This document shows, piece by piece, positions 2,858-30,849 of a stretch of 64,000 nucleotides of DNA; the stretch's first letter is position 1, and each line of letters begins with the position of its first letter. Source of the DNA: Takakia lepidozioides (taxonomy: Eukaryota; Plantae; Bryophyta); contig CM060731.1 of the NCBI GenBank assembly GCA_030704615.1, positions 47,554,001 through 47,618,000 of the forward strand, in the 5' to 3' direction. Both the position numbers and the translations under genes were made by a program. The notes under the pieces are model-generated. The model saw nothing but the letters and a program-made list of their open reading frames with translations. It did no database searches and was not told the DNA's origin.

Positions 2858-5800
2858 TTACCGGTTAGTCCGTGACTGCTTCTGTGTTTCAAAATGCAAA
2901 TCATGTTGCAATGGTTTATCATGGATACCACAGTATCCCTTCAACTTATTGGCATTGACTCTTCCCAGCATCTCTTTGTTAATGGTCTGTAACATGGCTG
3001 TGTTGTTATCATACATCTTCTGTATGACATAAGGTCCTTTCCATGGTGACTTAAGCTTAGAAGCTTTAATCTTCCCCTTCTATTGCAACCACATAACCAA
3101 ATCTCTCGTCTTAAAAGTTTTCAATTTACCTTCATCAAATTGATCCTTCCTCTTCATCCGAATCTTGGTCATGTTATCTGCTGCATCAGCACGTACTTCT
3201 TCCACATGGTATAATTCATGTTTCTTGAATTTAATTGAATCTTCCAATTCCATTCTTCTTCCCCATTCCGTTCTCATAGTAGGTAATAAGAATTCCACTG
3301 GAAGTAAAGCTTCCATACCATAAACTAATTGGAATGGTGTATACTTGATAGTGACTTTATATGAAGTCATGTGTGACCACAAAGCTGTCAGCAGCTTTGT
3401 ATCCCAATCTGTTATGTTTGCATTGACTATCTTAGCCAAGATAGTACATAGTATTTTGTTGGTGGCCTCTGCCTGCCCATTGCCCTGTGGGTAATAGGTT
3501 GTACTCTTCTTGTGCATAATCATGAACTCTTTAGTCAATAATTCTATGGTCTCATTAATGAAGTGATTTCCCTGGTCACTGATAAATTCCAAGGGACAGC
3601 CAAATCTTGTAAGTATGTTCTCATACATGAACCTTGTTGTAGACTTAGCTGTGTTGTCCCTCAGAGCCTTAGCTTCCATCCACTTTGTAGTATAATCAGT
3701 GGCTGTGATTATATACTTGTTTTGTGTATTTCTGGTTGGTGGGTTTATTGGTCCAACAAAGTCCAGTCCCCATTTCTGAAATGGTTCAGTAGGCATCGTC
3801 GGATGCAAAGCCATCTTTCCAGATCTTTGCAAAGGTCCTAGCCTCTGACACTCATCACAACTCTTGCAATACTTGTGCACATCTTTGAACAGAGTAGGCC
3901 ACCAGTAACCTGCAAGTAATATTTTTCTGCTGGTAGTCTCATCTCCAAAATGACCTCCAGCCACTCTTTTATGAACTTCTTCCAAAACTTTATTTACTTC
4001 ATGGTGGTACAAGCATCGTTTAAGAACTCTCAGGTCCTAGCTTATACAATCTGCCACCTATCATAGTGTAGGGTAAAGCCTTGATAACTATTCTCTTCCT
4101 CTGTTCTTGCCCATAACTGGGTGGGCACTAACCATGAGTAAGGTAGTATCTGATTGGCCACTGCCAATCTAACCAATCATTTGCACTTCCCTGCACCTCC
4201 ACTGCAAATAGACTCGCATCAGGTAGTTGGTCGTCTACTCCCGTGGCGGGCTCTCTTGTTGATAGGCGTGACAAGTGATCTGCCACAAGATGCAAACGGC
4301 CAAGCTTGTAAACAACTTCGAATTCAAATTTGTGCAAGATTATTAACCATCTTGCTATCCTGTCACTTATCAAAGGCTTGTTCACCAGATAAATCAAAGC
4401 CTGATGATCCATATAAAACATAAACTTCCTTCCCAATAGGTAATGCCTGAATTTCTTGACTGCATAAATCATTGCCAATGCTTCTCTTTCAGTGTAGCTA
4501 TAGTTCATTTCAGCACTGTTCAACAACCTGCTAGCATAATACACAAGTGAATCTATGTTTCCTGTGATATTTTGGGCTAACACAGCTCCCAATGCTTCTC
4601 CTGAGGCATCACAGTGTACATGACATACTACATGTCAGTGAGGGTTAATCAGCACAGGTGTAGTTGTTACTGACAATGTAAGTTCCTCAAAAGCCCGTTG
4701 ACATTCAGCTGTCCATGTAAACACTGCATCCTTCTTCAAAAGCTTGCTCAATGGAGCTGCCATCTTTGCATATCGTTTAACAAACCTTCTATAATAAGTA
4801 GTTTGTCCAAGGAACCTCCTCAAACCCTTCACGTTACTTGGTGGTGGTGAGGCTTTAATAGCCTTTGTCTTTCTAGGATCCACAAGCAGTCCCTTCTTAC
4901 ACACATGTGTCCCAGTAGTACCCCTGAGTTGACACACACTTTTCCGGATTCAGTCCAAGACCTCTCATCCTGCATCTGGCCAAACATAACTCCAACTTCA
5001 GCAAGTGCTCATTCTTAGAGCTGTACACACTGAAGTCATCTAAAAACACTTGCATGAAATCATCCAAATACTCATGGAAGGATTCACTTATCACTCTCTG
5101 AAATGTTGCTGGTGCATTACAAAGTCCAAAAGGCATGACTTTGTATGCATATGCACCCCAGTCTGTGATAAAAGCTATCTTCCCCTGGTCTTCTTCCACC
5201 ACTTGCACTTGGTTATACCCACTGAAGCCATCCATGAATGAGTACATCTCATGGCTTGCCATAGTGTCCAGTACAGCTTCTGTGAATGGCAAAGGAAATG
5301 GATCTTTCTTTGTACAAGCATTCAACTTCTTATAGTTCACACAAACTCTCAGTTTGCCATTCTTCTTGGGAACTATCACAATGGGTGATAACCAAGTTGT
5401 ATATTCTATTAGGTATATGAATTTAGCCTCAGCCAACTTCCTAATCTCTTCCCCAACCTTCTGTGCATAGTTAGGATTCATCCTGTACCTAGCCTGTTTG
5501 ATTGGTACCGACCCTGGTTCCAGTTCAATCTTATGCTGACAAATCTCATGTGGTATCCCTTTCATATCCTCATAGCTCCAAGCAAATACATCTTTGTATT
5601 TGATAAACATGCTCTTAGCTTCCTCAAAGAATTCTGGCTCCAAGTCAGCCCCTACTTTCACCATTCTTGGTTCCTCCTCAGTTCCCACATTCACGTCTCG
5701 CACCTGCTCTTCAGCTGTGATTGTCCATCTAGCCACTACTTCATCCTGTAAACTCACAGTGGCTGGTTCTTCTAGGATTTCCATTTCTCCCTCTCTTTCC

Positions 5801-6365
5801 TCATAGAAATGTGGTGGTAACTACTTGTTTCCCCCTCAATTGGTGTTGCTGTTACTGCACCACAACAGATATCTTTAAAACAACTCAGGCCTCCCAGTTG
5901 CACTGCAACCTGCTCCCACTCTGGGTGCGCAACAAACATGATAGCTTCCTGCTCCTCATCAAGTCCTCCCCTCCAGTCATACTCTCTGACTCCACGAGGT
6001 CTTCTGGTAGCAGGTAGCCTACTAGATTTCTTAGTGGTGACTTGTATCTTGTGCTTCCCATCATGCACAGTCAGTAACTGGGAATTCCAATCATGGAATA
6101 CCCTGGCCTGTTTCAGCCATGGTCGACCCAGCAATAAGGAATAAGCTTCCATAACATCATCCATTTTCAACACAGTCACTGTGATCTTACAGACCATCTT
6201 CTGAATCTGTATCTTAACTCCTCTTATCAAGCCTAATGGCTGTACACTCCTTGGATCTGCCATTGTTACTGTAAATGGGGCTGGTTTCATGTTACTTAGG
6301 CCAAGCTTCTGCCTTAATTGGTCTATCATAATACTCACTCTGAGCCTCCATCTATCAGTACAATT
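2858..6365 (-). pseudogene. Gypsy pol (protease-RT-RNase H-integrase), broken by frameshifts and stops
   Basis: Covered by ORF pieces 5772-6449, 4897-5784, 4635-4937, 4128-4592 and 3080-4012. The integrase continues in frame past the TAG at 3080 (KGKIKASKLKSPWKGPYVI) to a TAA at 2858. Confidence 0.93.
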
Positions 6366-6464
6366 CCTCGTGTGCCTGTGCCTCCGACATAAAAAATCAT
6401 CATTCAAATTTTTTTGATCAAGGAACCTTTGGTTTATCCTTTTCACCATTAACGATTAAATCAC

Positions 6465-10790: not shown

Positions 10791-11932
10791 GATTGACAAT
10801 ATAAATCATAATATATGAATTTTACAGATAATTAATGAAGTCCACGTAATGAGGCCACATCGGTTGCCACGTTGGTTCTCATAGTAAATAGTCAATAGTA
10901 AAGTAAAAAATTAAATATATTTATGTACAGTAACATCGGTTTAGGACGTGACGTGACGCACGTCCGTCGCTGACGTCGGACGTGACGCTGACGCGTCAAC
11001 GCCACGTTACGTCCAAATTTGCAACTAGGACTTCAAGGAGGTGGACTAGCTAGAGACAACATGAAGGTGAAAGCATTGCAGGACTGGAGTTTGACGTGTT
11101 TTGCATTGGCCCCGGGTTTGAAGTAGCACATGTGCATGGCCTAGGGGTCTGATTTCAGATATGCATGTGGATTGTCAAGTGTGAATAAAAATTCATGTTC
11201 AATTTCAGAAGATGAATTGAGCTCTAAATCATTTAAATTAGATCAAAAAGGTTTTTTTTTTTGTTTTTTTTTGTTTTTTTGTTTACACCAGATGAAGGTT
11301 TGGTAAACATTGCCCGGCTGTATCTGCATTATCAAAGTTTGTTTTTGTCTTCAGTTTCAGTTTCAGTACTGTTAAACTCATGGGTGATACAATGTACCAC
11401 CAACGTGAAAGTGAAAGGCAGTATGTATTTCCATGGTTTGGTTTTGAATATGCATATGGATGAAAACTGCATGTACATGTGAGACAGATGGAAAACGGTT
11501 GGTGACAGTGCCATTATGTAACGCACTTGTAACGCCTACACTGTCGGTGGCATGTCCCCGTCATTGTCTCGCCCAGGTTATTGTCGCTCTGGCCAAGGGT
11601 TCATGTTACATAGGTTGTGCATCATTGGGAGGATATAAAGGGTTCTAGAATAAACAGCTCTTGCACTTCTCCATTTCATTGTCTTCACTTTTTCCTGCTT
11701 GCACACCCACTTGTGCCATACTGATTTCATTGAGGTCATCCTTGCCATAGTTTTCTTGGGTTTTCTGCCCACATGAGGTCTTTGTGTTGCAGGTATTAGG
11801 GTCCTCTTGTACATCTCATATTATCAGTTTGCACTCTTGTTACTACTTCTGAATGTAGGCTGAGTTTGTGTTGCAAGTTCGAGGGTTGTCATCTTTGCAG
11901 TTTCCCTCACACTTTGCACAGTTCAGCTTCCA

Positions 11933-12319
11933 TTGTCCATGGATTCCACCCCAACATCCACTTTTCGCGCCAAGGTCTCTGAAATATTGTACAAAGCCCT
12001 CATTGCTGCTTCTGCCATGCCTTCTCACAACATGCAGCTGCACATTCTTCAAAAGATTGAAACCGAAGCGGGGCAGGACAAAGTCTGGAAGTACCACACT
12101 GTGGACTCAGTGCGCTGCATGACAGTTGACTTGGGTGCTTTGGAGCGTGTCTATACTATGGACGAGGAGGAGCAGTCAGGTATTTTCCTTTGCCATGTTC
12201 TTATGGGATTTGTGGACAAGCTCATTTTCAAGACATTCAAGTACTGCACCTCTCGGTTTGATGGGGTGGCCCCAGTAGATTGGGGTTATCATATCTCCCT
12301 GGATGCGGATTGGGTGTAG
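11933..12319 (+). CDS. Hypothetical 128-aa protein within the TE-like block
   Basis: Open frame with protein-like composition; no domain recognised. Confidence 0.35.
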   Translation: MSMDSTPTSTFRAKVSEILYKALIAASAMPSHNMQLHILQKIETEAGQDKVWKYHTVDSVRCMTVDLGALERVYTMDEEEQSGIFLCHVLMGFVDKLIFKTFKYCTSRFDGVAPVDWGYHISLDADWV

Positions 12320-16054: not shown

Positions 16055-16897
16055 GGTCAGTGCAGGAGAGGATTAGAAGAGGTATTACCATGCGTCGGAC
16101 GAACCATTGACCATACGCTTTACCCATCATACTATTAGCAAATTCCACGCTCCCCACAAATGCAGCAAGACTTTCTAAAAAGCAGGGATTGTCAGGTGAA
16201 GGGAACCCATCAGGCAACAAATTGTAGTCCATGAGGTAGCTGAGACCTGGGCGTGCAACAGGTGCAGGTTTGGGAGGAACGACAATGTCAGATTCAGTAT
16301 CAGAGAAGTTGCCACAAAGGCTTGTTTGGCCTCTTCTCTAGTCGTGGATTGAAGCAAAGCAGACTTGATCAACTGATCCAGAGTTGGTGCCTCTGTATGT
16401 GTCCTCGTTGGTGGGTCTGGCAACATGATAGTTTCCTCGTCCATTGCCATGTCCCCCGCCTAAAGAGGTACATGGGAGTCCTTAGCTGGTAGCCGCAAAT
16501 GCCTCCTCCGCTTCATTTCTGGTTGAAATTCGTCTTCACCCCCACTGTCCTCCCGGCCCACCTTCGCCCGCGAGTTTTTGCGCGGTAGATGCCCATGGTC
16601 CTTCAGAACAGTCTCCATCAACGCCCTCTGACCGGCTTCAAACATAGGGTACATTTTTAGCTTAGCCCCACCCTTCCCAACAGCAACACACCCATTTATC
16701 CTGTGAACGTTTAATTTTTTTTTGTCTTTATACACCTGTTTACAGTAGATACATATGAACGGCTTCCTGTTATTATCCCCGGGTTCATCAAGCCTTGCCC
16801 TCGTGTGAGCCTTGCAAATCAGTGCTTCCCACTCATCAGTATCATATTCCTCATGGTATACCCGACGCGCTTCGAGCATGGTGGATTTTTTCACCAT
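12700..16897 (-). pseudogene. Degenerate multi-exon gene with an N-terminal zinc finger (CxxC-x12-H-x4-C) and a long unrecognised body
   Basis: 16460-16897 contains FICIYCKQVYKDKKKLNVHRINGC. ORFs 15215-15601, 15017-15214 and 14663-15010 share one frame broken only by single stops. ORFs 13897-14478 and 13552-13890 continue after a frameshift. The 3' boundary is approximate. Confidence 0.55.
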
Positions 16898-18299
16898 TTC
16901 GGAAGTACAGGTAGACAGCGTAGACCACTCCTGCCCTGAAGAAGCCGACGTTCATGTTAAGGCACAAACTGAGAGTGCGAATGGGTACTAACATGGGCCC
17001 TCACAACGAAGTATAAGCCATTTCCATTCTGGTCGCCACCATCTTGCATAACCGAAAGAAGCCATGCATTTGGCACACGAAGAATGCATTGGAGGGAAGA
17101 GCAAGACATTGGCAACACAATGCCAATGGGAACACAATGCGACGACGTAAAAAAAATCCACAAAACTCACATTAATCTCTGAACCCTAAAGACAGACTTA
17201 TGGAGGTCTTCTAGCTTCACCTGCAACACGAGAATGATATAGGCAGATCAACAGAAGCTCCCGAGCATGAGAAAAGCAGTCGCACAGCAAAGCAAATGAA
17301 AAGGAAGGCGTTTCGGTATACGTACACTTCCTTCCGAATCGTGTTGCACAAGATCCAAGCGCTACTTACATGAAAAAAGCGGGCGAAGGGTGTGTAACCA
17401 AAGCAAATGAGAAACATGAAACAAGAAACACTGACGCTGCTGAGAACCTCCTCCGAAATGCTTTCCTGCGGGGCACATCTTTCATTGAACTTGCCACAAC
17501 GTATGCACATGATGTTTCCAGAACACGCACTACGGCATCGATAGAGACGGTGGCACGGTTCAAGCGACGTGGTTGAGGAGAGACGTTCCCTCGCATACGA
17601 AGCGTCGCCTCAGCGTCTCTGTAAGCAGCTGACAATCACTTCCGCAAAGCACGATCACGTCCTAATCTGTATGCAATTATGAACAATGCATGTATGAGCA
17701 GACATGCATACATGTGGGACGACGCATGCATGTATGACAACCTTCACATATGGATGCATGCATGGCAATGACATCCCAAATGCCCACAGGGATGCCCATT
17801 GTGACATACTCGACCCCATATGTTTTCGGGCATTCGGCTTGTACATTAGGATGACGCCCTCAACCAAGATGTGCTTCAGCATCCCAGCCCCAAAAACAAT
17901 GTTGCTAACAACAGTCTATGGCCCTGTGGAAGAATGCTGGAGGGATTCCGAAATGTCTCGTGCATCCTATACACCCACCTTCAACTCTGAAGCGGTGGCG
18001 GCAGATGTGTATGCCTTAGCAAAGAAAGAATGACGAAAACGACGGCTGTAAAATGAAAATGTGGATGTGCATAATTCATGAGGCGATGGAAAACGTGATG
18101 TGAGTTCAACGCCCGTGCACCCTTCTTTATCGTAAATCTTATGGTATACCTTCAATCTTGTTTGAAACTGCAGTGTATGCTTACATTGTCCATGCAGCCA
18201 CTTGACATGCTCTGTGGGGTCTGTTCAGGATTTGTTGTGGTGCAGTGGTGAGCAAGACTATAGACGTCTGGTTCTTCCAAGATTCGTTGTCCCCTTAGA

Positions 18300-19338
18300 T
18301 CCCTCTTAGACTAGAAGATGCAGATGATCTGGTGGATGAAAGGGGCTAGACAAGTGACCGTGTGATGGACTTTTGGGTGTGTTGCAAAAAATTGTCCCTT
18401 CCACATAATGTGTACAGAAAAATTCGTGTGCTAGACATCTTTGCCTGGATGTGTCTTCGCACCCATTGCAAGAAATTTGGAAACGGAGTCAGCTCTATAC
18501 AGGCTTGGGTGGACACAAGGTTCCCTACCCTTGACTGTATTGGTGTCGAAGTGCTCGTTGTCCCTGTTACATTTAAGTGAGTTTTCTCCATTTAACCTGC
18601 CTCTGTTCCTATCACTTTCGTGCATATGGGTTCTATTTCATGCACATCCTGATGAAGACTAAGCTGAAGGTGTGAATGTTTTGTGTAGCAACCACTGGAG
18701 TGTTCTTATTTTGGAACACGAGCGCTATCTTCACTTCAATAGCATTAAAAGCCTGCATAAACACAAGATGTTGAAGCCTTTGTTTGCAAGAGTGTGGGCT
18801 GTACTGCGAGGATTATACCCTCCAAACCCAAAGTGGACAGAGGCCACACACCCAAAGCGGTGGGTGACCCCCCCTGTGCCCCAGCAAGTCTCCAACTGGG
18901 AGTGTGGCATGTTTACTGCTCATTACATTGATGTGTACTTGGAGGAAACATTTGTCAACCCAAAACCAGGTGGCGCAGGCCCGGTAAGCACACTCTTCCA
19001 ATACTATAATACGGATGCTTTGCTTGCTGAAGTGCTCATGGCCATTGCTTTCAACGTGCTTCCCCTACTATAGTTTTGCGGTGCAGTTTCTCAGTGTGAG
19101 AACTTGTTTGCAGCTGAACCTGCAATGGTTCCCCGTTGAGGCTGCTTTGAAAAAGAGAGGGAACATTCGCAATTTGGTTATGGCAGAATTGGAGGGTCGA
19201 GGAGGACATGGCCTCCCATACGCACGACCACCATATGTTAGACTTCCTAAAGACCTTGTGCAACCTGTTGTCCTTGCTACCCACCTTTTGCAGCCTAGGT
19301 CCAGAACTCGGTACAGTTGTCGCAACAAACTGAAATGA
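18300..19338 (+). pseudogene. Ulp1/SENP-like (peptidase C48) protease, degenerate; upstream exons probably start at ~17200
   Basis: Motifs SDRVMDFW...VLVVPV, then NHWSVLIL (His), LHFNS (Asp replaced by Asn) and VPQQVSNWECG (oxyanion Gln, catalytic Cys). There is an in-frame stop upstream. Confidence 0.85.
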
Positions 19339-19399
19339 AAAGTTTTGCCTTGTCACTGCAATGCTCAATTTCATTCTACACACTATCCTGGGTGACGAC

Positions 19400-20020
19400 C
19401 TCACAGGGGACGGAGACCGGACGGGGGAGGCAGGAAGCCCAATCGCGGCGACTGCGGGCCGCGGCGTTGCCGCCAAGGGGGGTTGGGGGGGAGGGGAGGG
19501 CCACGTAGCAGCCCCGCTGATGGCGCATTAAACTCCAAGGCCTCTTCTATTACTTGCCCTTTCCTTGCTTCAATCTGTAGGTCCCAGAAAACACGAGAGA
19601 ACACAATAGAGATGGAGCAAGAATTACCTAAAGAGACCATGCACATCTAGCCTTCCAAATATGCCAGAGCGTTGAGCTCCTAAGGCACTCGAAAACTGGG
19701 CAGATAAAAACTTTGTTTTTTGTGTTGATATCGTAGTTAAGAAGTAGGTTGATAACTGACAAGGTTTGGGCATTGCAATCTGCATAAAAGTTTTTAACAA
19801 CGGGCCAGATCCTGGTTGGCCGGGCTTGACAGAATAGGAGGCACTGTTCCAGTATAGTTTCCAGCAAACCAGAGGAGCAATAGGAGCATAGCATAGCATC
19901 CTGGAACTGTAGCCATTCTCCCACCTTAAGAGCTTTGTTTGCAATCTGCCATAGAAATGCTGAATTTTTTGCTGATTGGACCTGAATCCATTATGAAGTA
20001 GCCCTCAATTAATGTTCTTT
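19400..20020 (-). mobile_element. LINE (L1-like) 3' fragment, zf-RVT region
   Basis: FLWQIANKAL...CSYC..LETILEQCLLFC...FECLRSSTLWHIWKARC; homologous to 55900-56610. Confidence 0.8.
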
Positions 20021-22620
20021 CCAACGTGGGTGGTTAATTATCTCTCTCTCTAATAACTGGCCGTTACCCACCCGGTTTTATTGGCTCCTCCCTCAAGAGG
20101 AGACCGCGCATCACTCTCAAAATGGGAGAAGATCCTAATATACCTTCATTGGAAAATATGTTGATATTAATGAGCATAAAATAATTTGTATTGTTTTTTT
20201 TTTTGTTTTTCTGAAATATGTTTTTAACCAGTAACAATCATTGGTAAATGGCTGGAGACCGGTGAAAGCCGTTGAAAGCCGGTCGCTATTTTTTCTTCCC
20301 TGCTCTCTGTTCGCACTAGCCTGGCCTTCGTCGTCCTGCCCTTGGGATCTGGGTGTGGAGGAATTGGTGCGACTCATCCTCGCAGGGAGGAAATGGCACC
20401 ATGAGCATGTGCATGCTGTCAAGACCGCGTCCTCTTTGTCTTCCCATCCCCTGATTCTCAAGTCGGGTTGCGTAGCAGCTCGACTCTTAACGGAAGTCCT
20501 CGTATCCAAGAAGACGGAGTGGTCTCGAGCAAGGCCTAATGATGAAGAGAGAGTAGTGCTATATGTACAATTTGTGTGGGGAGCATGGCCTCTGGACTTC
20601 CTAAAGAAGGAATGGATGGAAAGTTTGGCAAAAAGGCTTGAGTGTTGCGAGGCCATCAACTTCTGCAATCTTTTGAATGTTTTCAATATTAGCTCCTTGG
20701 TATTTCCAGATTGCAAATCATGAGAGTTTCCAAGTGGAATTGTGATGGAGAAGCTGCGATTGCTGATCCATTCGATCGACATGTTACGCAAATTGTTACT
20801 CAGATTCAAGCTCAATGCAAAGTTGAGCCTCTCGATTGCAGTGAAATTCAGTGTCCGGATGAGAGAAGGAAATTATCGTGCGAAAGAAGGTCCTCTTCCA
20901 AAGAAACAACGATCGCTGACTCCTCAGCATGCTTATGCTATTTAGACTCCATGCTTACCATTTTTGGAGATACCTGCAACTGTTATGTATAACACAAACT
21001 CCTTCGTTGAAGTTGACGATAATTCTTTGCTTGCTTTTGAACTATCAAAGATATATTTTACGGAGGACTTTGACGTTGAGTCTGCTGATCAAGATGTGTT
21101 TCCTCTATGTGAGAACGAAGACGAAAATGATCCTGACATTGAAATTGAACAATTATCGCCATGAGGACGACTCATTGAGATGTCGGTTTCGTGATGTCGA
21201 CAAAGATGAAATGGCAAATGTACTTGGTGGAAGTCAACGCCGGTCGAAGCACGCTGAAATATGGGCCCACAACGCCTTTAACTGTTGGCGTAAATTTTCG
21301 GGGCTATGAGCCAAATTAAGTATTGAAGACTTGTCGGAAGATGACTATGTAAAGGGATTTGTGGACATGATAACGCTGTTTATCCTTTAGGTTTGCAAGC
21401 GAGACGGGTCCCTATATGGCCCGCCTGGAAGTATTCAGGCTATGCAGGTTCGAATAAAAAATCCTCTGTTTAGAGCGAGACAAGAAATGCGTGTTACAGA
21501 GACCGGTGTCGCTCTGGCTTCAAAATTCAACATTACACAAAAATCAAGGTAGCCGGCGTTTAAGCGGTACTTTAAACGATCGTCGTAAGGCTCAAGGTCT
21601 TCGGAGAGTCATCAAAAAGTCAGACATACTCACTCGTGTTGAAAAGATCCTAATGCTCTGTCAACCTACTACGAGTCCTTCATTAGTCAACTATCGCTCC
21701 GGATATTATTGCACTCGTAATTTCTTTATAAGAGTAGGCATTGAGCTTCGTAACGTGGACGAGGAGGAGTTCGAGGTCGTCGATACTAGGTTGGGACGAG
21801 TCCTCAGGTGAGTGATTGTTATTTTCATGTGTGAATTGTTTTTAATTAATGATAGACTATATGGTTCTAATAGTAGTTGATATTGTTGTACAAATACTGC
21901 CAAGGAGTGTCTAAGAATTATAATTAGATGTCAATCATTGTGGAGCGGATTTTCATAGAAACTGTCAACTGTCCCGATCAGGAGGTTATAGATGTGTTTC
22001 TGATATTGAAGAAGCATCGTCGAGGGTGACTAGCTACCGAACCAGGACCTCACATTCTTTTCCTCACTCGACGTTAAGAAATTCAAGCTCTCAGATGAGG
22101 TCTAGTTCACTAAGACTCCAGTTGGCAGGAAGATGCTGAGGTCTTTCACCCATCGAATGACGAGAGAGATTCCCCAATTTGCTGATAAAATCTTCTATAA
22201 CACTAGGAGGGGTACGGGTATTACGCGTATGGAGGAGGCATTAGTGCCGGTCGAATACGGGAGGACTCAAACTGGTTGTTGTGCCAAAGCATATGCAAAG
22301 TGAGTATCATTCACACTGTGTTTATAATTTGAATCTGACTTGGTTTCTTACATTTTTAGATGTCTCATGTGACAACTATTTAATGTTTCATATTTGACCT
22401 ATTTGTCCATATAATCAGGTAGATACGGTGCTTGTGGATCAAGCTTGTCAGCGGATAGTTTCTGGAGAATCGATGAATGGAAAGCCCATGTCATTTGAGC
22501 AAGCTCTTTGTGATGGAAAAAACTAAACATCGTAAGGTCTTGGAGTCGGAGTATGGATCTCGTACTATTGGAGAGTCGTCAGATTCTAATCTTCTCCCTA
22601 GTAGTGATCTTCCAGATCGC

Positions 22621-25600
22621 TGGCGGATCGGTGACAGAGTTCATCAAGCAACTCAAAGAGATTATCAACCAACTAGCCAACATAGGAGAACCTGTCCGTG
22701 AAGAGGACCTGATTGATCAGATTCTGAATTCTCTACGTGAGAGCTTGGAATCACTGGCATGCACCTTGATCTACCGACCTGAACTTCCAACGCTCAATGA
22801 ATTGATTGGTATTCTTCTATTGGACGAAGCCAAGCGAGAAATTCGGGAGGCTCGTGGAAAAAAAACTGACCCTGAGGCTTTGCTGATCAAGTCTAAATAT
22901 AAAAGCCAGCCCACCGACAATAAATATCGGAAGGGGGCCACTGTCAAGCGTGAGGGGAGATGCAACTTCTGCGGTAAACCTGATCATTGGATGCGCAATT
23001 GCGCTGAATTGTCAAATGAGATCAAGCGTCGTGCTGCAGAACGTCTCAAAAATTCTGTCAACATCATTGAAGACAGTAGCGATGAGGAGATCGATAATTT
23101 TCAGGAGTGCAATGATGCTCCCACTAACAATCTAGCTGCAGATATCCTCGAGCTCAACGTAGCTCAGTACCGCGATGCATCTGATTGGTATGTGGATAGT
23201 GGGACCACTAAGCATGTCTCGGGCAATGACAGTCTTCTATCCAATATCAAAAAGGGAGAAGGAAAATCCAAGGTCAAAACTGCTGGAGGCCTGTACTACC
23301 AAGTAGCCGGGAAAGACAATATTGTGATTCCTGTCAAGAATGATGCAATAAAGGAATAAGTTTTGTATGTCCCGGGTGTATGCAAGAATTTGCTATCTGT
23401 TGGTACCTTGACTGACAAAGGATTTAGACTTCTCTTTGACGACAAGAATGTTTTCTTGCTGAATGCTGGCCTTGAGGTACTTGGTATACGAATTCGTGAT
23501 CTATCGAATGGCCTTTACAAACTATCAGTGTTGAATGAATCATCCGCAGGCACAGTGGAAAGTAGCACGGACCTCACACGGATCTGGCATCACCGGTTGG
23601 GCCACTTGAATTGCAGGAGTCTGAATTTCTTATCACAGAAAGGTCTTGCCGTCAATCTTCCTCAACATCTATCCATGAGCCATGATGTCTGTCATGCATG
23701 TGCGTTTGGAAAGCAAAGTCGGGAGAAGCTCCAAAGAAGAGTCTTCACAGAAGTTCATCGCATCTTGATATGATCCACACTGATCTGTGGACCATTGTCC
23801 ACACCCTCTCTCTCTGGAGCTTTGTATGTTCTTACATTTACAGACGACTATAGTCGGTACTGTTGGGTCTTCTTCCTTCGGAAGAAAAGTGACACCTTCA
23901 TCTTGTTCAAGCAATTTAAGTCCAGAGTTGAGAAACAGTTTGGACGTACTATCAAAGTGTTGCGATCAGACAAAGGTGGGGAGTACTACTCGACTGCATT
24001 CTCAAATTTTTGTGCAGATCATGGCATAACACGACAGTTCACCCAATCTAACACCCCGCATCAAAATGGGATTGCAGAGAGGAAGAACCGAACTCTGATA
24101 GAGCGAGCCAGGAGCTTGGCCTTCGGGGCCCATCTTCCAACACGTCTTTGGGCAGAGACTGTCAGCACAGCAAATTACCTTGTCAATATGTCTCCTACCA
24201 GGGCGAACAATGGCATCATACCACACCAAAAATAATTTGGAGCCCCGCCTGATGTCAAACACTTGCGAGTGTTCGGCTATGTATGCTTTGTCCACATCAA
24301 CTCTCACCGGACCAAATGGTCACCAAAATCCATTTGGTGGGGGGCAGATCTTCAAGAGTCCATGTCTCGTTCTTGTGAATTGAGGCCATTTCCTCTTCCA
24401 TGGCGTCGACCCATCCTGGGTGTCGAGATGCTTCGGCATAGGTGGTGGGTTCTAGGACAGCTTCAGACAAACCCACCACGAAATCATGGAATCGTCTTGG
24501 AGGGTGAATGGCTCGGCCAGTGCGCGTATATACACATTCCTGTATTGGTGGAACTGCCTCTAGTTGCCTATGCATACTGGAGGTCGAGGCAGAACTACCC
24601 TCTAAGTCTGCACTTGACTGACCTGTAGATGATGACATAGAAGGCAAGGATTCATGAAGAGTATCTGAGTTTGGGTTATGCAATCCTTTGAACAAGTTGT
24701 CATCAGTACCTTCAGGTGGTTCTTGGACTGATGCAGGCTCCAAAAAATCAGGAGACTCTTGTTGTGGGAGCTCCCGCCGTGGTCCGTCCGGCTGGCTATC
24801 GGCTGGCCATGAGAAATGAATGTTGTGATCTTCAAGTGGTTGTCTATCAACAGCAGCTAGGACATAGTGCATGTGATCCTCATCAAAAACAACATCCTTA
24901 GAGATGATTATTTTGCTCATCCCTGGACAAAAGCATCTATAGCCCTTGGTGCTAGTGTCATAACCCAAAAGTACACACCTCATGGACACACGCTGATGGA
25001 ACCACTGCCAAATTGAAGGCGCATTTGGTGGCTTGTGGTTTCCAACAACGAGCAGGGGAGGATTTTGATGAGACCTACGCGCCGGTGGCCAAATACAACG
25101 CCTTGCGAGTTGTTATAGCACTAGCAAGTCAGAATGGTTGGCCTATATTTTACTTAGATGTCAAAATTGCCTTCTTAAACGGTGAATTGACAGAGGAAGT
25201 GTTTATCCAGCAACCTGAAGGCTTCGAGGCTAAGGGGAAAGAGAGCAAGGTTTGCAAGTTACGTAAGGCCTTGTATGGTCTTCGTCAGGCACCTTGTGCC
25301 TGGTACACCAAAATAGACAATTACCTTCAAGAACAAGGATTGAAGCGCACGAACTCGGATGGAAACTTATATTACTTCAGAGAAGGAGACAAAATTGTCC
25401 TACTCATGCTGTATGTAGATGATGTTTCTCTTACTGGTAACCATGACAACAAGCTGCAATGGATACGATCAGAGATCAAGAAACGCTTTGAGATGATAGA
25501 CATGGGTCTAATCAAGCACTCTCTTGGGCTTGAGTATTTCTTTCAACCTGAAGGGATCATTGTGACTCAAAGGGGCTATGCGGCCCAAATGCTGGAAGAA

Positions 25601-26340
25601 TTTGGATAAAGGCAATGCAACGCAGCAGTCACGCCCATGCTCCCCGGGCTCAAACTCAAGATTGACATGGGAGCACCAGCGGTGGACACCCAACTCTATC
25701 AACGAATGGTTGGGAAGTTAAACTTTCTTACTCAAACACGGCCGGACATCTCTTTTGCCGTGAACATGGTGAGCAGATTCTCCAACCAGCCTCAAACCCC
25801 ACACATGGACGCCATCAAACATCTATTTAGATATATCAAAGGTACTGTGGATTTGGGGATTTGTTACCAGCGAGGAGAGGCAAGCATCCTCACTGGATAC
25901 TCAGATGCAGACTGGGCCGACGACCTCAATGATCGGAAGTCCACCACAAGATATCTGTTCAGACTAGGTTCAAGTCCCATCTCTTGGGAAAGCAGGAAAC
26001 AACCATGCACGGCTCTGTCTTCGACAGAAGTTGAGTACATGGCTATGACTAGTGGTGCTAAGGAGGCGGTGTGGTTAAGAAGGCTTCTTTCACAACTACA
26101 ATTCCTTGATGAGAAAGAACCCACGGAGATGATGTGTGACAATCAAAGTGCAATCAAGCTGTCAGAAAATCCAGTCTTTCACAACAGAACGAAGCACATA
26201 GAAATCCGTCACCATTTTATTAGGGAAAAAGTCACAGGAGGAGAGTTGAAAATCAATCACGGTTCCATCCAAAGATCAACTGGCGGACATTCTTACTAAG
26301 CCAATGGGTCGGACCCTCTTCGAAGAGCTTCGAGATGAAC
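22621..26340 (+). pseudogene. Copia gag-pol, fragmented
   Basis: ORFs 22553-23359, 23363-23773, 23795-24235, 25013-25609 and 25637-26299 on plus, and 24297-24989 on minus. Several stops and frameshifts. Confidence 0.93.
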
Positions 26341-26512
26341 TTAGCTTGAAAGGAGGAAACTTGTCCACAAATCGCAACATAATGTTTCTCCGATGGCTAA
26401 ACACTCCACTCTATGAACGCTGAGCAGATCTATTTTGGAGAACACCATCGTTGACATTATACTCACTTTGAAGTTGCAGTGGGCTGTCAAGCTTCTAAAG
26501 TTCGAGGGGAGG

Positions 26513-26837
26513 TGTTGGAGATGGAGATCCACAGCATGGTCAAGTAGGATTAACTCTTAGATGCTACTCTTAGATGCTACTACTAGGTTTAATATTTAGC
26601 ACGTAAGTTAGCAGATACACAGAGAAGCCACCCTCCGTAGTGGTGAGCCCAGTTAAGCTTAGCGATCTATGATGACCACCACACTTAGTTGCTGCCCCAC
26701 TCTCTGCAGGCTTGACCATCTAAGGGAGAACTTGGACTTCCCTGCAGAGCTGTTTAGAGCTTCAGTATATAGTGGGCTCTTAGAAAGTTGGAAGTCAGAC
26801 CTTTTTACAGTATGCTTTCCTTACCTGATCCACTTTA
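26513..26837 (+). repeat. Copia 3' LTR (325 bp, TG...TA)
   Basis: Preceded by the PPT GAGGGGAGG (26504-26512). It differs from the inverted copy at 27516-27840 by 12 substitutions by my manual count. Confidence 0.96.
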
Positions 26838-27503
26838 GCCAAGAGCTCCGAATACATTGTAAGGATTCTCTTTTTGGTTCACCAAATCCTGCAGCACATG
26901 AGAAGAACCGCTGCAAACAATTGTGCTAGTAGACGGCGAAGTAGCAGGGATATTAATATCCTCCTTAAAATGAACAACATCTTGTTGTGAAGCAGTGGCC
27001 AGAGGAACAATGTTAGAAATAGGACCTACACAGCCATTCTCCAATCGAATGTTGGTGAGGCGGCTCTTGAGCAATAGACGACGTGCTCTGCTTTTCTGCT
27101 CATACAGGTCTTTCAAAGTCTGCCACATGAGCGCTGGATCTGTGATCCCTGCGATGTGTGGAATAATTTCATCTCGCACAGAGAGACTGATTATCGCCAA
27201 TGCTTTCTTCCGCCTACGTTCGTAGTCAGCGGCAGACTCTCCTTCCCTCTCTTGGAATTCTCCCTCGGCATTGGGCTCTAGGATGTCTATCAGTTCATCC
27301 CTTTGTAACAAGCTGGAAACACGGAACTTCCAGGTATTGTAGTTGGAAAGTCCACCTAGCTTTGAGACCTTTGATACACTGCTTTCCCCGTGGGCCATGC
27401 TGACATTCTCACAAATACTACGGAGTTACACTGTTGTTACTGTCACCTAGCAAAAGTGCTATCCGAAGTCCTAATGTTGAGCAAAGGGTCCCACTACTAA
27501 CCT

Positions 27504-27515
27504 GCTCTGATACCA
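27504..27515 (-). promoter_or_regulatory. Primer binding site (tRNA-iMet)
   Basis: TGGTATCAGAGC on the minus strand, adjacent to the 5' LTR. Confidence 0.93.
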
Positions 27516-27840
27516 TAAAGTGGATTAGGTAAGGAAAGCTTACTGTAAAAAGGTCTGACTTCCAACATTCTAAGAGCCCACTATATATTGAAGCTCTAAA
27601 CAACTCTGCAGGGAAGTCCAAGTTCTCCCTTGGATGGTCAAGCTTGCAGAGAGTGGGGCAACAACTAAGTGTGGTGGTCATCATAGATCGCTAAGCTTAA
27701 CTGGGCTCACCACTATGGAGGGTGGCTTCTCTGTGTAACTGCTAACTTACGTGCTAAATATTAAACCTAGTAGTAGCATCTAAGAGTAGCATCTAAGAGT
27801 TAATCCTACATGACCATGTTGTGGATCTCCATCTCCAACA
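27516..27840 (-). repeat. Copia 5' LTR (325 bp, TG...TA)
   Basis: Reverse complement of 26513-26837; followed directly by the PBS. Confidence 0.96.
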
Positions 27841-28759
27841 TTGGCGTGTCTACATCGTCGCATTTTGGTCATAACTTCAATAATCTTACTAACTGCAACA
27901 TCTCTGTGCAAGTTTTGGATCATACTTCTGCTTTGGACTTCTTTAAGAAGATGCAAGAGAAGCTTAATGATTAGCTCTAGACAATAGAACTTGAGCCATT
28001 TTACGAAGAAACATGCGTATATCATATACTCAAGTTGTTTAGCATGATAGATTTGTAGATAGTGTACATAAATTTGATTGATCTGAAAGCAAACAAATGC
28101 TTCACCATTCTTTAGCAAATTTCAGCACACATATTGAATTTGAGGCTGAATTTCCTTGCGATGAATAAAACTTGATTTCTAATTCTTTTGAATTTTTGCG
28201 TCATTTTAGTGTCATGGAATTAAAATTTCAGTTCTAAGAAAATGTAGAAGAAAAGAAATCGTGACGAAAAGAAGTATTTAAGAGAAATATTGAATAGCAG
28301 ACCCTTACAAATTTGTAAGATTACCTGCTAGCCTAGGAGGACCTTACAACCCCCGTAAGGTACCTCCAAAAACAGGAGGAAAGTTCTGGTCGGGAAGGTA
28401 CGAAGGTACCTCCACAAAGGAAAAATTAGGTCAGGTTTTTACGAATCAGGGACTTTTCTTTTTTTCTTTTTATTTCCCAAAAAGGGAAACACCTAGTAGC
28501 GACAACTCACAAATCAGGCCCCATAAAAGTGAATAGGGAGGGTTTTTTAAATTCCCCGGAGATGGCTTCTATCCAAGCCAACAGTGATTATTATGAAATC
28601 AGGGTGTGCTGTTTAATCTCTGGCAAGGTAAATCCTTTTCCTCCTTTTGAGCTCCAGCATTACAATGGTTCACTTATGTGGTTTTTTTCGGCTGCAGTCA
28701 AACTGCTGCAATTCGACCCAGGGAGAGTGGTCTTGGATGAATAAGGGGCATGACCACTT

Positions 28760-29450
28760 CTTCATGTACGGGTCTGATATCTGGAAAAAAACATAGGATC
28801 CAGAGTGGCTGTTGGAAGATCGCTAATAGGATCATCCCAGTTGCTGCTATGTTCTCGCCTTTCCCTAAGAATTTGGAACACTGCCTGTGGATTGCCCCTT
28901 TGCTCGAGTAGTGTGGGGCAAGGCCCTTATCCGAACTCTTTCCTACTCCTCTTCTGCCTTGCTGCTAAATATTAAAGATGGTGCTATCTTCTGCTCCTGC
29001 CTTGTTTGGGATTCACTTAGAGGAATTATTCTGTGGAATATTTGGAAGATGAGATGTGCTGTTCTCTTTCAGAATGTATGCAGAGAGTCATGTATTGGGC
29101 TCACTCAGACCTGGTGTCTGAAGCTCGCAAAGCATGGCTTGTGATTTTGGCAGCTCTTCCCAAGTGCGGCGTCAATTACTTGCTTCCTTTGACAATTCAC
29201 GGGGAAAAGGCAACTTCTTCGCCAGAAGGGTTTCAGACTCTAGAGTTATATGGGAAGACGCTTTCCCTTCCTGCTGGCAACAATAGTAGTTGTATGCCCT
29301 CTCCGCTGGAAGTTGAAGACTCGGAAATCAATTGGAGGCACAAGCGTAGCTATAGGAAGGGTAGATCAAAGGCTCAGCTCACCTTTGACACTCCCAAGTG
29401 CAAAAGGGGGAGTATGTAGCGGGTCTTGGTTCTTCCTATAAGCTAGCTGT
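28760..29450 (+). mobile_element. LINE (L1-like) 3' fragment, zf-RVT region
   Basis: WKIANRIIPV...LEHCL.DCPFARVVW...WDSLRGIILWNIWKMRC. The tail INWRHKRSYRK is shared with 55080-55140. Confidence 0.8.
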
Positions 29451-30849
29451 TGGTTGTTTGCTGGTTGTTAGTTGTTTCTTGGTCAAGGTGAGAACATATA
29501 AGATATTTTTTCTTGCTTGAGCTTGAGATGAGGTTACAACTGTAATTGCATATGATGCTGGCCCTGCGATTGTTGTCTTAGTGTGTGGGAAGATCCGGAG
29601 TATTGTGAAGGTAACTTTTCAGCCTTCTGCACTGCAATGAGGACATCCTCTACCCACACAAATGGGCTGACAGCCTTCTTTGTCACATCTCTGGAGAATC
29701 AGATCATATAGTGGGAGTTTCTGATGTCCCCTGTGTATTTGGTGACAAGACTTGCGCAGAATGTGGAAGTACAAGTTGCATTCCAGATTCACGTGGTATG
29801 CTACTGCTGGCACCCAAGTCACCAGGCAAAAGTATGGACATACTATCGACCACCCATTTTCCTAACGATGCTAAGCATTGGCACATACCATCCGAAATTA
29901 ACTGACACTCCGGAAGGCACACTGGAACGAATCTCAGTATTTCATATGTGTTTGACGAACAGAGTATCAGCTTAGAAGTTACTTCACCGCTCAACCATGC
30001 AAACATATTCACTTCTTGGGTATCTACAAATACACATATCATTGGTTCTCCACACCACATTCTTTTCAAGACATTCATTTCTGAATCAGTTTGAGCTTGT
30101 AGATTCCTCGCTTTGAGCCAGTACATCGTTGGAGAAAGAAATGTTGTTGAACTGTGATTTCATAGTTAGTTTATTTGATGCCGAAGCAGACTCTTTGCTC
30201 TGACATCTTTTTGAATCTTTCACCCACCAGCTTGCGCACTTGTTTGTTAATATGAAGAAAAGTGATTCAGGGGTGCTTTTGTCTTGACCACCCACGCGAT
30301 ATGGCCCATTACCCCAGCATAGCGTTCGGACTCATCCGGAAGAGTTCAGCTTTTTACTAGTGTGTTAAAACGATTCATCCTGGAAGGCCACCCACAAGCA
30401 GTGCTCAGTGTACAGCCTGAACTCTCTTCCAAGCTGGGTGACTGCACAGGGCTCTCTCTGTTGTAGACTTGAACCAAAAAAGGCCTTTGGTTCCGGAACT
30501 CCTGAAGCTCAAACATGCCCAGCTGTCTGGTTTGAGTCCCAGTCACCCAGGCACATGTTCCCTCATGTCTTTCGAGTCTCGACCTCCTTGCCTTTGCCAA
30601 TATGCTCATGGCTTCTCTATGCTCAAGACAGAGAGCGAACAAAGGCAAGCAGGCTTTCATCTGGGTACCCTCGACACCCTATTTCATTCGTTTCTCAATC
30701 TGTCATCCAAGAACCCCGTGGGGTGTCGATGAATGAAATCGACGTAGCCTTTAGGCATGGTCAATGTAACTCATCAGGTGTTGAAGAACATGGTCCGTAG
30801 ACAGCAATTGTAAGTATAGTTGGATAAATAATTTGATATGACCGTTGCT

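Follow-up and report, generated by a model that had tools for sequence, protein, structure and literature searches.

Identification of a decayed recombinase gene

The 64,000-nucleotide stretch of Takakia lepidozioides (Bryophyta) DNA analyzed here, referred to as the window (NCBI GenBank assembly GCA_030704615.1, contig CM060731.1, positions 47,554,001 to 47,618,000 of the forward strand), contains at 21178-27974 a locus that, judged by homology, is a fossil DUF3504/CryptonA-type tyrosine-recombinase gene without present function. The recombinase family to which it belongs is spread through non-seed land plants. The window copy probably descends from a plant Crypton-like transposon, a reading that draws by analogy on two other genomes, namely, that of the liverwort Riccia sorocarpa and that of a moss-like metagenome. 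An earlier interpretation of the letters of the window (the sequence-only reading) had proposed a dead DUF3504/Crypton-type tyrosine-recombinase gene at this place, and the proposal was supported both by a profile of the family and by relatives that pass the DUF3504 cut-off.

A family hidden Markov model (HMM) was built from the relatives only, leaving the window rows out, and run against 2652 six-frame segments of the window. The HMM matched four stop-free pieces at 20920-21306 (E 1.4e-6), 21458-21808 (E 1.9e-15), 22106-22300 (E 1.5e-16), and 22398-22523 (E 2e-7), all on the + strand and colinear with the profile order, and no other segment among the 2652 scored, indicating that the recombinase match is real and not a product of chance. 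Searching the window by tblastn with a protein of R. sorocarpa (P0009) gave matches at 21178-21351, 21596-21808, 22076-22300, and 22410-22514, likewise colinear and on the + strand (E 1e-9 to 1e-15); P0009 together with its paralogue P0012 also matched 21184-21549, and identity was 35-47% over all matches. The motifs listed by the sequence-only reading (WAHNAFNCWR, SKNY, FTKTPVGRKML, NTRRGTGITRM, and others) were all present in the three-frame translation of 20700-22700, a stretch whose reading is broken by stops and changes of frame. Motif and HMM matches alike are far beyond chance. The searches used individual stop-free pieces, and the continuity of the frame was argued from the existing open reading frames (ORFs).

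When the 65-amino-acid (aa) piece at 22106-22300 was compared with 1.84 billion representative proteins, four of the nine matches were true relatives; the other five were low-complexity repeat proteins and were discarded. For a 106-aa piece, a lookup in the ESM Atlas gave no usable result and a word-indexed protein search was empty. The window showed zero nucleotide similarity to all related loci, and no second recombinase copy was found inside it.

Plant relatives and the link to canonical CryptonA

CryptonA elements are DUF3504 tyrosine-recombinase DNA transposons of animals (Kojima & Jurka 2011, PMC3212892). The gathering score of DUF3504 (PF12012) is 29.7, and three plant relatives, P0009, P0013, and the ORF of the Riccia locus L001, scored 31.7-32.7 bits. 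P0009, a "hypothetical protein" of R. sorocarpa (KAL3687813.1; 31.7 bits), also showed a weak Phage_integrase match in its last third (E 0.06). In P0013 (425 aa, from a public run; 32.7 bits), the catalytic domain is open and shows the set R-K-K-R-H-Y; the neighbours of this protein in the ESM Atlas were clusters of DUF3504/Phage_integrase, ZMYM2-like/QRICH1, ALOG+integrase, and NDC10_II proteins. A profile search of Protein Data Bank sequences returned zero matches.

A metagenome scan provided a canonical CryptonA-type gene for comparison (L016; WLWD01003814.1, 2101-3495, on a 37-kb contig), which has a single stop at 2830-32, the full HxxR/H/Y motifs, and the tail MNFNNCSVNI. Its Pfam matches were DUF3504 (60 and 44 bits), QRICH1 (37 bits), and Phage_integrase (44 bits). 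The plant family aligned with the two halves of L016 in hhalign at 96% (E 1e-9) and 91% (E 1e-6), and the QRICH1 match of L016 lies in the portion to which the N-terminal half of the plant family aligned. In these alignments, the plant motifs IRG..ELRN, NK..R, and TGH(R/K)D..SY.KY were paired with LRGGEEHRN, NHSLR, and TGHRS..LRRY of L016, respectively. Because of this alignment, the catalytic Tyr is predicted to be the second Y of SY.KY, nine residues after His-III. Plant copies were 24-27% identical to L016, and identity among the plant lineages was 40-50%.

The sequence-only reading had described an R-K-HxxR-H-Y layout. Its R, K, R, H, and Y were retained; however, all plant copies seen have KxxR and not HxxR. 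Lys stood at the His-II position in all readable plant copies (P0009, P0002, P0003, P0005, P0013, and L011), so that the set of the intact relatives is R-K-K-R-H-Y, with Lys replacing His-II. Type IB topoisomerases also have Lys at this position, and by this analogy the replacement need not abolish catalysis. The FNNC.I-type tail pointed out earlier proved to be a true feature of the family, found in six independent loci, always downstream and on the same strand: the window tail GHNFNNLTNCNIS matches GHQFSNLTNCHIT in L010, and the motif is also present in L005, in the Riccia loci L003 and L004, and in L016.

Gene model and decay of the window copy

The window gene consists of four exons and three GT-AG introns (Table 1). 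Exon 1 encodes an N-terminal domain of DNA-binding type (WAHNAFNCW, VCKRDGSLYGPPGS), followed by the first part of the catalytic domain, including Arg-I (AGA 21731-33). Exon 2 carries the catalytic Lys (AAG 21913-15, in SKNY), FTKTPVGRKML, and N-TRRGT with Arg-II at 22208-10; in the latter motif one codon is missing at the His-II/Lys position. At 22271-82, TGCC replaces TGH(R/K), so that His-III has become Cys. In exon 3, a TAG at 22420-22 aligns with the catalytic Tyr, at the same distance of 9 residues from His-III as in L016, and is followed by ..QRIVSGESMNGKPMSFEQAL... Both losses had been stated in the sequence-only reading (TGHR read as TGCC, Tyr codon read as TAG) and were confirmed at these coordinates. 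The catalytic set R-K-H-R-H-Y is therefore incomplete, with Arg-I, Lys, and Arg-II kept and the His-II position, His-III, and Tyr lost.

The copy contains at least seven in-frame stops, at 21307, 21388, and 21550 in exon 1, at 21925, 22027, and 22103 (Trp to TAG) in exon 2, and at 22420, together with at least four frameshifts, namely, near 21550-60 in exon 1, near 22075 in exon 2, and two in exon 3.

Intron 1 appears as a gap in the alignment to an intronless Riccia ORF, and an intron lies at the equal place in the moss-like copy L011. The codon and phase of introns 1 and 2 are common to the window copy and L011, and both introns are absent from the continuous Riccia ORFs. Intron 3 is shared with Riccia, its position and phase being those of a GTGAGT intron in L004; all relatives diverge after ..KV/..LQ. 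The earlier reading of a gene with two introns thus stood as regards the presence of introns, but it missed the third, and the "FQ" of the FQIAG that it took as coding is the acceptor TTCCAG at 22610-15.

Table 1. Coordinates of the features of the window locus and of related loci (nt, nucleotides; LTR, long terminal repeat).
Feature	Position	Strand	Remarks
Upstream region, unique	20677-21177	+	Probably 5' part of unit and acidic N-terminus; left limit uncertain
ORFs of putative acidic N-terminus	20711-20992, 20964-21164	+	Frameshifted
Exon 1, decayed	21178-21807	+	tblastn; HMM E 1.4e-6, 1.9e-15; hhalign 91% to CryptonA-type N-terminal half
Intron 1	21808-21893	+	GTGAGT donor, phase 2; acceptor decayed to AA
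Exon 2, decayed	21894-22299	+	HMM E 1.5e-16, protein search, alignments
Intron 2	22300-22418	+	GTGAGT...CAG, phase 2; codon and phase as in L011
Exon 3, decayed	22419-22532	+	HMM E 2e-7; two frameshifts
Intron 3	22533-22615	+	GTAAGG...TTCCAG, phase 0
Exon 4, first 9 nt (IAG)	22616-22624	+	Ends at inversion break
Inverted segment	22625-27032		Copia interior (gag C-terminal part to RNase H), LTR 26513-26837, GCCAA 26838-42, exon 4 middle
Nested inversion in Copia	~24329-24989		Integrase C-terminus to reverse-transcriptase linker on - strand, between + strand integrase and reverse transcriptase
Exon 4, middle	27032 down to 26838	-	CVGPISNIV...NVFGALG
Remaining Copia end	27033-27840	-	gag N-terminus 27033-27398 (Retrotran_gag_2, 63 bits), LTR 27516-27840
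Target duplication, second copy	27841-27845	+	TTGGC
Exon 4, end	27846-27974	+	VSTSSHFGHNFNNLTNCNISV...LND, stop 27972-74; conserved tail
R1sor_014122	L001 10001-11275		Annotated hypothetical protein; broken transposon gene
R1sor_003333	L003 9746-10890		Annotated hypothetical protein; broken transposon gene
R1sor_022961/R1sor_022962	L004 10001-11519		Annotated hypothetical protein; broken transposon gene
Lox-like sites	L001 9513-9560; L004 9555-9600, 11951-11993; L003 14449-14400 (reverse complement), ~11905-11950

Copia insertion and inversions

Insertion of a Copia element into the last exon produced a 5-nt duplication, and a later 4.4-kb inversion broke exon 4 and the Copia gag. The Copia had been recognized by the sequence-only reading and was confirmed by its inverted LTR pair and the GCCAA duplication. 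The two LTRs (26513-26837 and 27516-27840) are 325 nt long, 96% alike, and in opposite orientation, differing by 8 transitions and 4 transversions (Kimura two-parameter distance 0.038), and GCCAA at 26838-42 has its reverse complement, TTGGC, at 27841-45. Pfam detected Retrotran_gag_2, gag_pre-integrs, rve, SH3_retrovirus, and RVT_2 in the element, and the LTR pair, the 5-nt duplication, and the order of gag, protease, integrase, and reverse transcriptase are those of Ty1/Copia.

The Retrotran_gag_2 match is divided between the strands, with profile positions 3-96 on the - strand at 27033-27398 and 98-168 on the + strand, beginning at 22625, indicating that the 4.4-kb inversion cut gag between two adjacent residues. 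Two chimeric ORFs lie across the breaks: the one at 26835-27398 (-) runs from gag into CVGPISNIV...NVFGALG, and the one at 22553-23359 (+) runs from ..IAG into gag. Both are open, and swapping their partners restores both frames. The breaks share the microhomology TGGC (22621-24 and 27033-36), so the inverted segment can be given as 22625-27032 or equally as 22621-27036. After the Copia and one copy of the duplication were taken out, ..GALG joined VSTSS.. in frame up to the stop at 27972-74. PISNIVPLATA of window exon 4 resembles LPDIVAPVAA, the start of the Riccia tail exon; since the exon-start and tail motifs have homologues, the un-inverted, Copia-free reconstruction of exon 4 is supported. 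The history of insertion and inversion offered by the sequence-only reading, with its stop at 27974, was thus correct; its inversion coordinates, 22621-27032, were 4 nt off and mixed the two equivalent pairs.

A nested inversion of 0.66 kb, missed by the earlier reading, lies inside the Copia. Positions 10-34 of SH3_retrovirus were found on the + strand (24263 onward) and positions 33-71 on the - strand (24989 downward), and an 8-nt inverted motif, CACCAAA(A/T)/ATTTGGTG, is present at the breaks. Both inversions may be attributed to microhomology-mediated repair or replication errors and not to a recombinase. It is very improbable that both are errors of assembly and that the exon in truth contains a normal Copia without inversions. 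A pair of small inversions in a space of 5 kb is unusual, and only one joint was checked, possibly against data of the same sample; nevertheless, a short-read contig bridged 22620 by 45 nt with 0 differences, confirming the inversion together with the split gag profile, and in-frame chimeric ORFs with clean microhomology at the breaks are the pattern of a true rearrangement.

Probable mobility of the family in Riccia and in a moss-like genome

R. sorocarpa has three copies (L001, L003, and L004) on three chromosomes, 76-93% alike over ~2.3 kb, each with one or a few stops or frameshifts. The public gene models place these lesions in introns: the stop (L001 10316-18) or the frameshifts are concealed by invented introns or by splitting of the gene. 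The left end, TATAGGGG.., is sharp and common to the Riccia copies, and it lies ~490 nt ahead of the ATG. The end site is a 10-8-10 palindrome, GGGGAGCCAC-N8-GTGGCTCCCC (also written GGAGCCAC-N8-GTGGCTCC), in which two 10-nt inverted arms enclose an 8-nt spacer and are followed by TTTAAGCCAC / TAAGCCAC. L003 and L004 carry the site a second time, equally oriented, at their right ends, where similarity ends just past it, and the unit is ~2.45 kb in size. By analogy, these end sites, present twice in direct orientation, look like lox/FRT sites. In L003, the left end is inverted and lies 2.5 kb downstream of the right end.

In the moss-like (peat-type) metagenome, a 2.6-kb AT-rich unit occurs at two different loci (L011 1944-4551 and L015 1961-4161), with 92-94% likeness and the sharp ends CCTAAAATATATGCC ... 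TTTTGATATCCA. Within it lies a decayed recombinase gene whose introns occupy two positions that also hold introns in the window copy. Sharp ends shared at different loci, in Riccia as well as in the moss-like contigs, indicate that intronless and intron-bearing lineages alike behave as small mobile units.

Copy number and limits of the unit

Contigs from the best DNA run of the source organism were placed on 16700-22620 at >=80% likeness. The body of the gene (20677-22620) was covered by a single read contig with 0 differences at a depth of 56.5, which corresponds to a single copy, implying that the window recombinase has no close paralogue. In contrast, the summed depth over 16700-20660 was 350-2800, with repeat edges at 20077, 20539, and ~20660. 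The segment 20240-20660, which the sequence-only reading had included as the start of the element, is thus part of another, high-copy repeat, and it was rejected as the 5' end. If the spacing of the Riccia copies, with the left end ~490 nt before the ATG, holds for the window copy, the unit would start near 20650-20680.

Origin of the window copy

We propose that the gene was once part of a small (~2.5 kb) Crypton-like DNA transposon. Its recombinase, with the active-site set R-K-K..R-H-Y, would act through site-specific recombination at the unit ends, cutting the unit out and inserting it again. The dead plant Crypton-like transposon of the sequence-only reading was borne out as regards a dead recombinase gene with mobile relatives elsewhere, but the body in the window is single-copy and no termini were seen.

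Several results weigh against a transposon origin. No second copy of the gene body (20677-22620) at >=80% identity was found in the reads of the source organism. The short direct repeats that the sequence-only reading expected at the termini were not found, since the flanks 19900-21200 and 27975-29600 shared no repeat of >=11 nt and no palindrome. The Riccia-type end site was not found in the window, and in Riccia itself it is known from 2-3 decayed copies. The three introns and their shared positions would also fit a host gene lineage. Pfam gave zero matches for eight stop-free pieces of the window (26-106 aa, decayed) even at E 10, so that the profile check proposed earlier held for the relatives, which exceed the DUF3504 gathering score, but not for the window pieces. 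AlphaFold2 predicted the P0013 core with too little confidence for the fold to be confirmed (mean predicted local distance difference test score 52), and Foldseek with this poor model listed Cre and the Tn1549 integrase in its top rows with weak values (E 0.4-1, template-modelling score 0.2).

Some of these results would be expected if the locus had arisen by duplication of a domesticated host DUF3504 gene, a plant counterpart of the ZMYM/QRICH1 type, and had then decayed, and were not a copy of a transposon. The three GT-AG introns, two of them common to a copy in another genome, the single-copy state, and the missing termini all point in that direction. We nevertheless consider such a duplicate unlikely: the intron-bearing copies L011 and L015 behave as a 2.6-kb mobile unit at two loci, all relatives seen are broken except P0013, whose catalytic core is open, and the locus sits among repeats. 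Furthermore, the catalytic set is complete in the readable copies, which in this respect differ from most domesticated DUF3504 genes (PMC13465315), and an intact ORF under selection is not a feature of the window copy, with its many stops and frameshifts. Horizontal transfer from arbuscular-mycorrhizal fungi (Glomhopper) or from animals, which is compatible with a plant transposon, seems decidedly less probable still. Glomeromycota, which colonize liverwort thalli, hold ~1,800 DUF3504 copies, and DUF3504 has been described as widespread in Opisthokonta only (PMC13465315); however, the plant copies are much closer to each other than to L016, the sole canonical copy compared. The clade-specific Lys for His-II and the shared introns suggest a long residence in plants.

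Returning to the transposon origin in its broader form, the chances are about even that non-seed land plants, at least liverworts and mosses, host an old clade of their own of autonomous ~2.5-kb Crypton-type transposons, with Lys for His-II, with lox-like 10-8-10 direct sites in Riccia, and with copies 90-94% alike from recent activity. The window copy would then be an ancient casualty of this clade.

Comparison with known systems

The plant family has the domain order of CryptonA, namely, an N-terminal QRICH1-type DNA-binding domain, the DUF3504 catalytic domain, and a C-terminal F.NC.I tail, and its motifs (..W...F..W, RK.DG..Y.P, LRG.E.RN, SKN, PVG.N.L, N..LR.T, and TGHR....Y) align with those of L016 in hhalign. 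As in CryptonA, the unit of the Riccia and moss-like copies is small, without terminal inverted repeats or an obvious target duplication. The family differs in its land-plant host, in Lys for His-II, and in up to three spliceosomal introns, and the Riccia ends bear a ~45-nt direct repeat holding the 10-8-10 palindrome, whereas CryptonA has 4-6-nt repeats only. The window copy further differs in being dead and in having no ends seen.

Glomhopper, a CryptonA subfamily of Glomeromycota, is likewise a DUF3504 element outside animals, with intron-bearing and intronless copies side by side and mostly truncated copies in nested repeats whose boundaries are hard to define; compared by description only, it differs in its fungal host and in retaining the standard catalytic residues (PMC13465315). 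The domesticated DUF3504 genes (ZMYM2/3/4, QRICH1, KCTD1, KIAA1958, and WOC) have the same domain and are also spliced, but they are intact, conserved, syntenic, and mostly without catalytic residues, whereas the window copy is a pseudogene from a lineage in which these residues are retained. The Riccia sites, with inverted arms and an 8-nt spacer occurring twice in direct orientation, are analogous to those of Cre/loxP and Flp/FRT and may permit excision as a circle; unlike these systems, the plant family has no detectable sequence match to solved structures.

Significance

To our knowledge, no eukaryotic DNA transposons other than Cryptons move by tyrosine recombination. Cryptons have been listed from fungi, animals, oomycetes, and a diatom (Kojima & Jurka 2011, PMC3212892), and a 2026 paper calls DUF3504 widespread in Opisthokonta (PMC13465315). 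A search of the literature on Crypton or DUF3504 in land plants, liverworts, and Marchantia, with incomplete coverage and Repbase outside it, found no description, and the Riccia genome paper does not mention Cryptons; the statement of the sequence-only reading that Cryptons are not described from land plants therefore held in the searchable literature. If the plant clade is real, it would extend the host range of tyrosine-recombination DNA transposons and open the question of transfer between mycorrhizal fungi and liverworts. For annotation, three "hypothetical proteins" of R. sorocarpa are broken transposon genes. The window locus itself, dead and single-copy, serves as supporting evidence for a plant DUF3504 family; beyond that it adds little more than a tidy illustration of how insertion and inversion can be nested.

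Neighbouring sequences

A repeat occupies 20077-20675, at up to ~50x single-copy depth and with sharp edges at 20077 and ~20660. Some of its copies lack 20348-20547, and its ORFs, on both strands, have no Pfam match. RNA-like contigs touched only 20074-20675 of the examined stretch. Further upstream, an ORF at 18672-19070 (+) encodes an Ulp1-type protease (Peptidase_C48, 28.3 bits). Some oomycete Cryptons carry an Ulp1-type peptidase (Kojima & Jurka 2011, PMC3212892); however, this ORF was rejected as part of the recombinase element, because its sequence is 10-16x deeper than the single-copy body.

Two ORFs, at 19624-19944 (-) and 28887-29144 (+), flank the locus in opposite orientation. They showed neither nucleotide similarity to each other nor a Pfam match; both end in W.IWK.RC, an ending typical of plant non-LTR reverse-transcriptase C-termini. 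By eye, the ORFs at 4897-6449 (-) look like protease and reverse-transcriptase regions from a further LTR retrotransposon.

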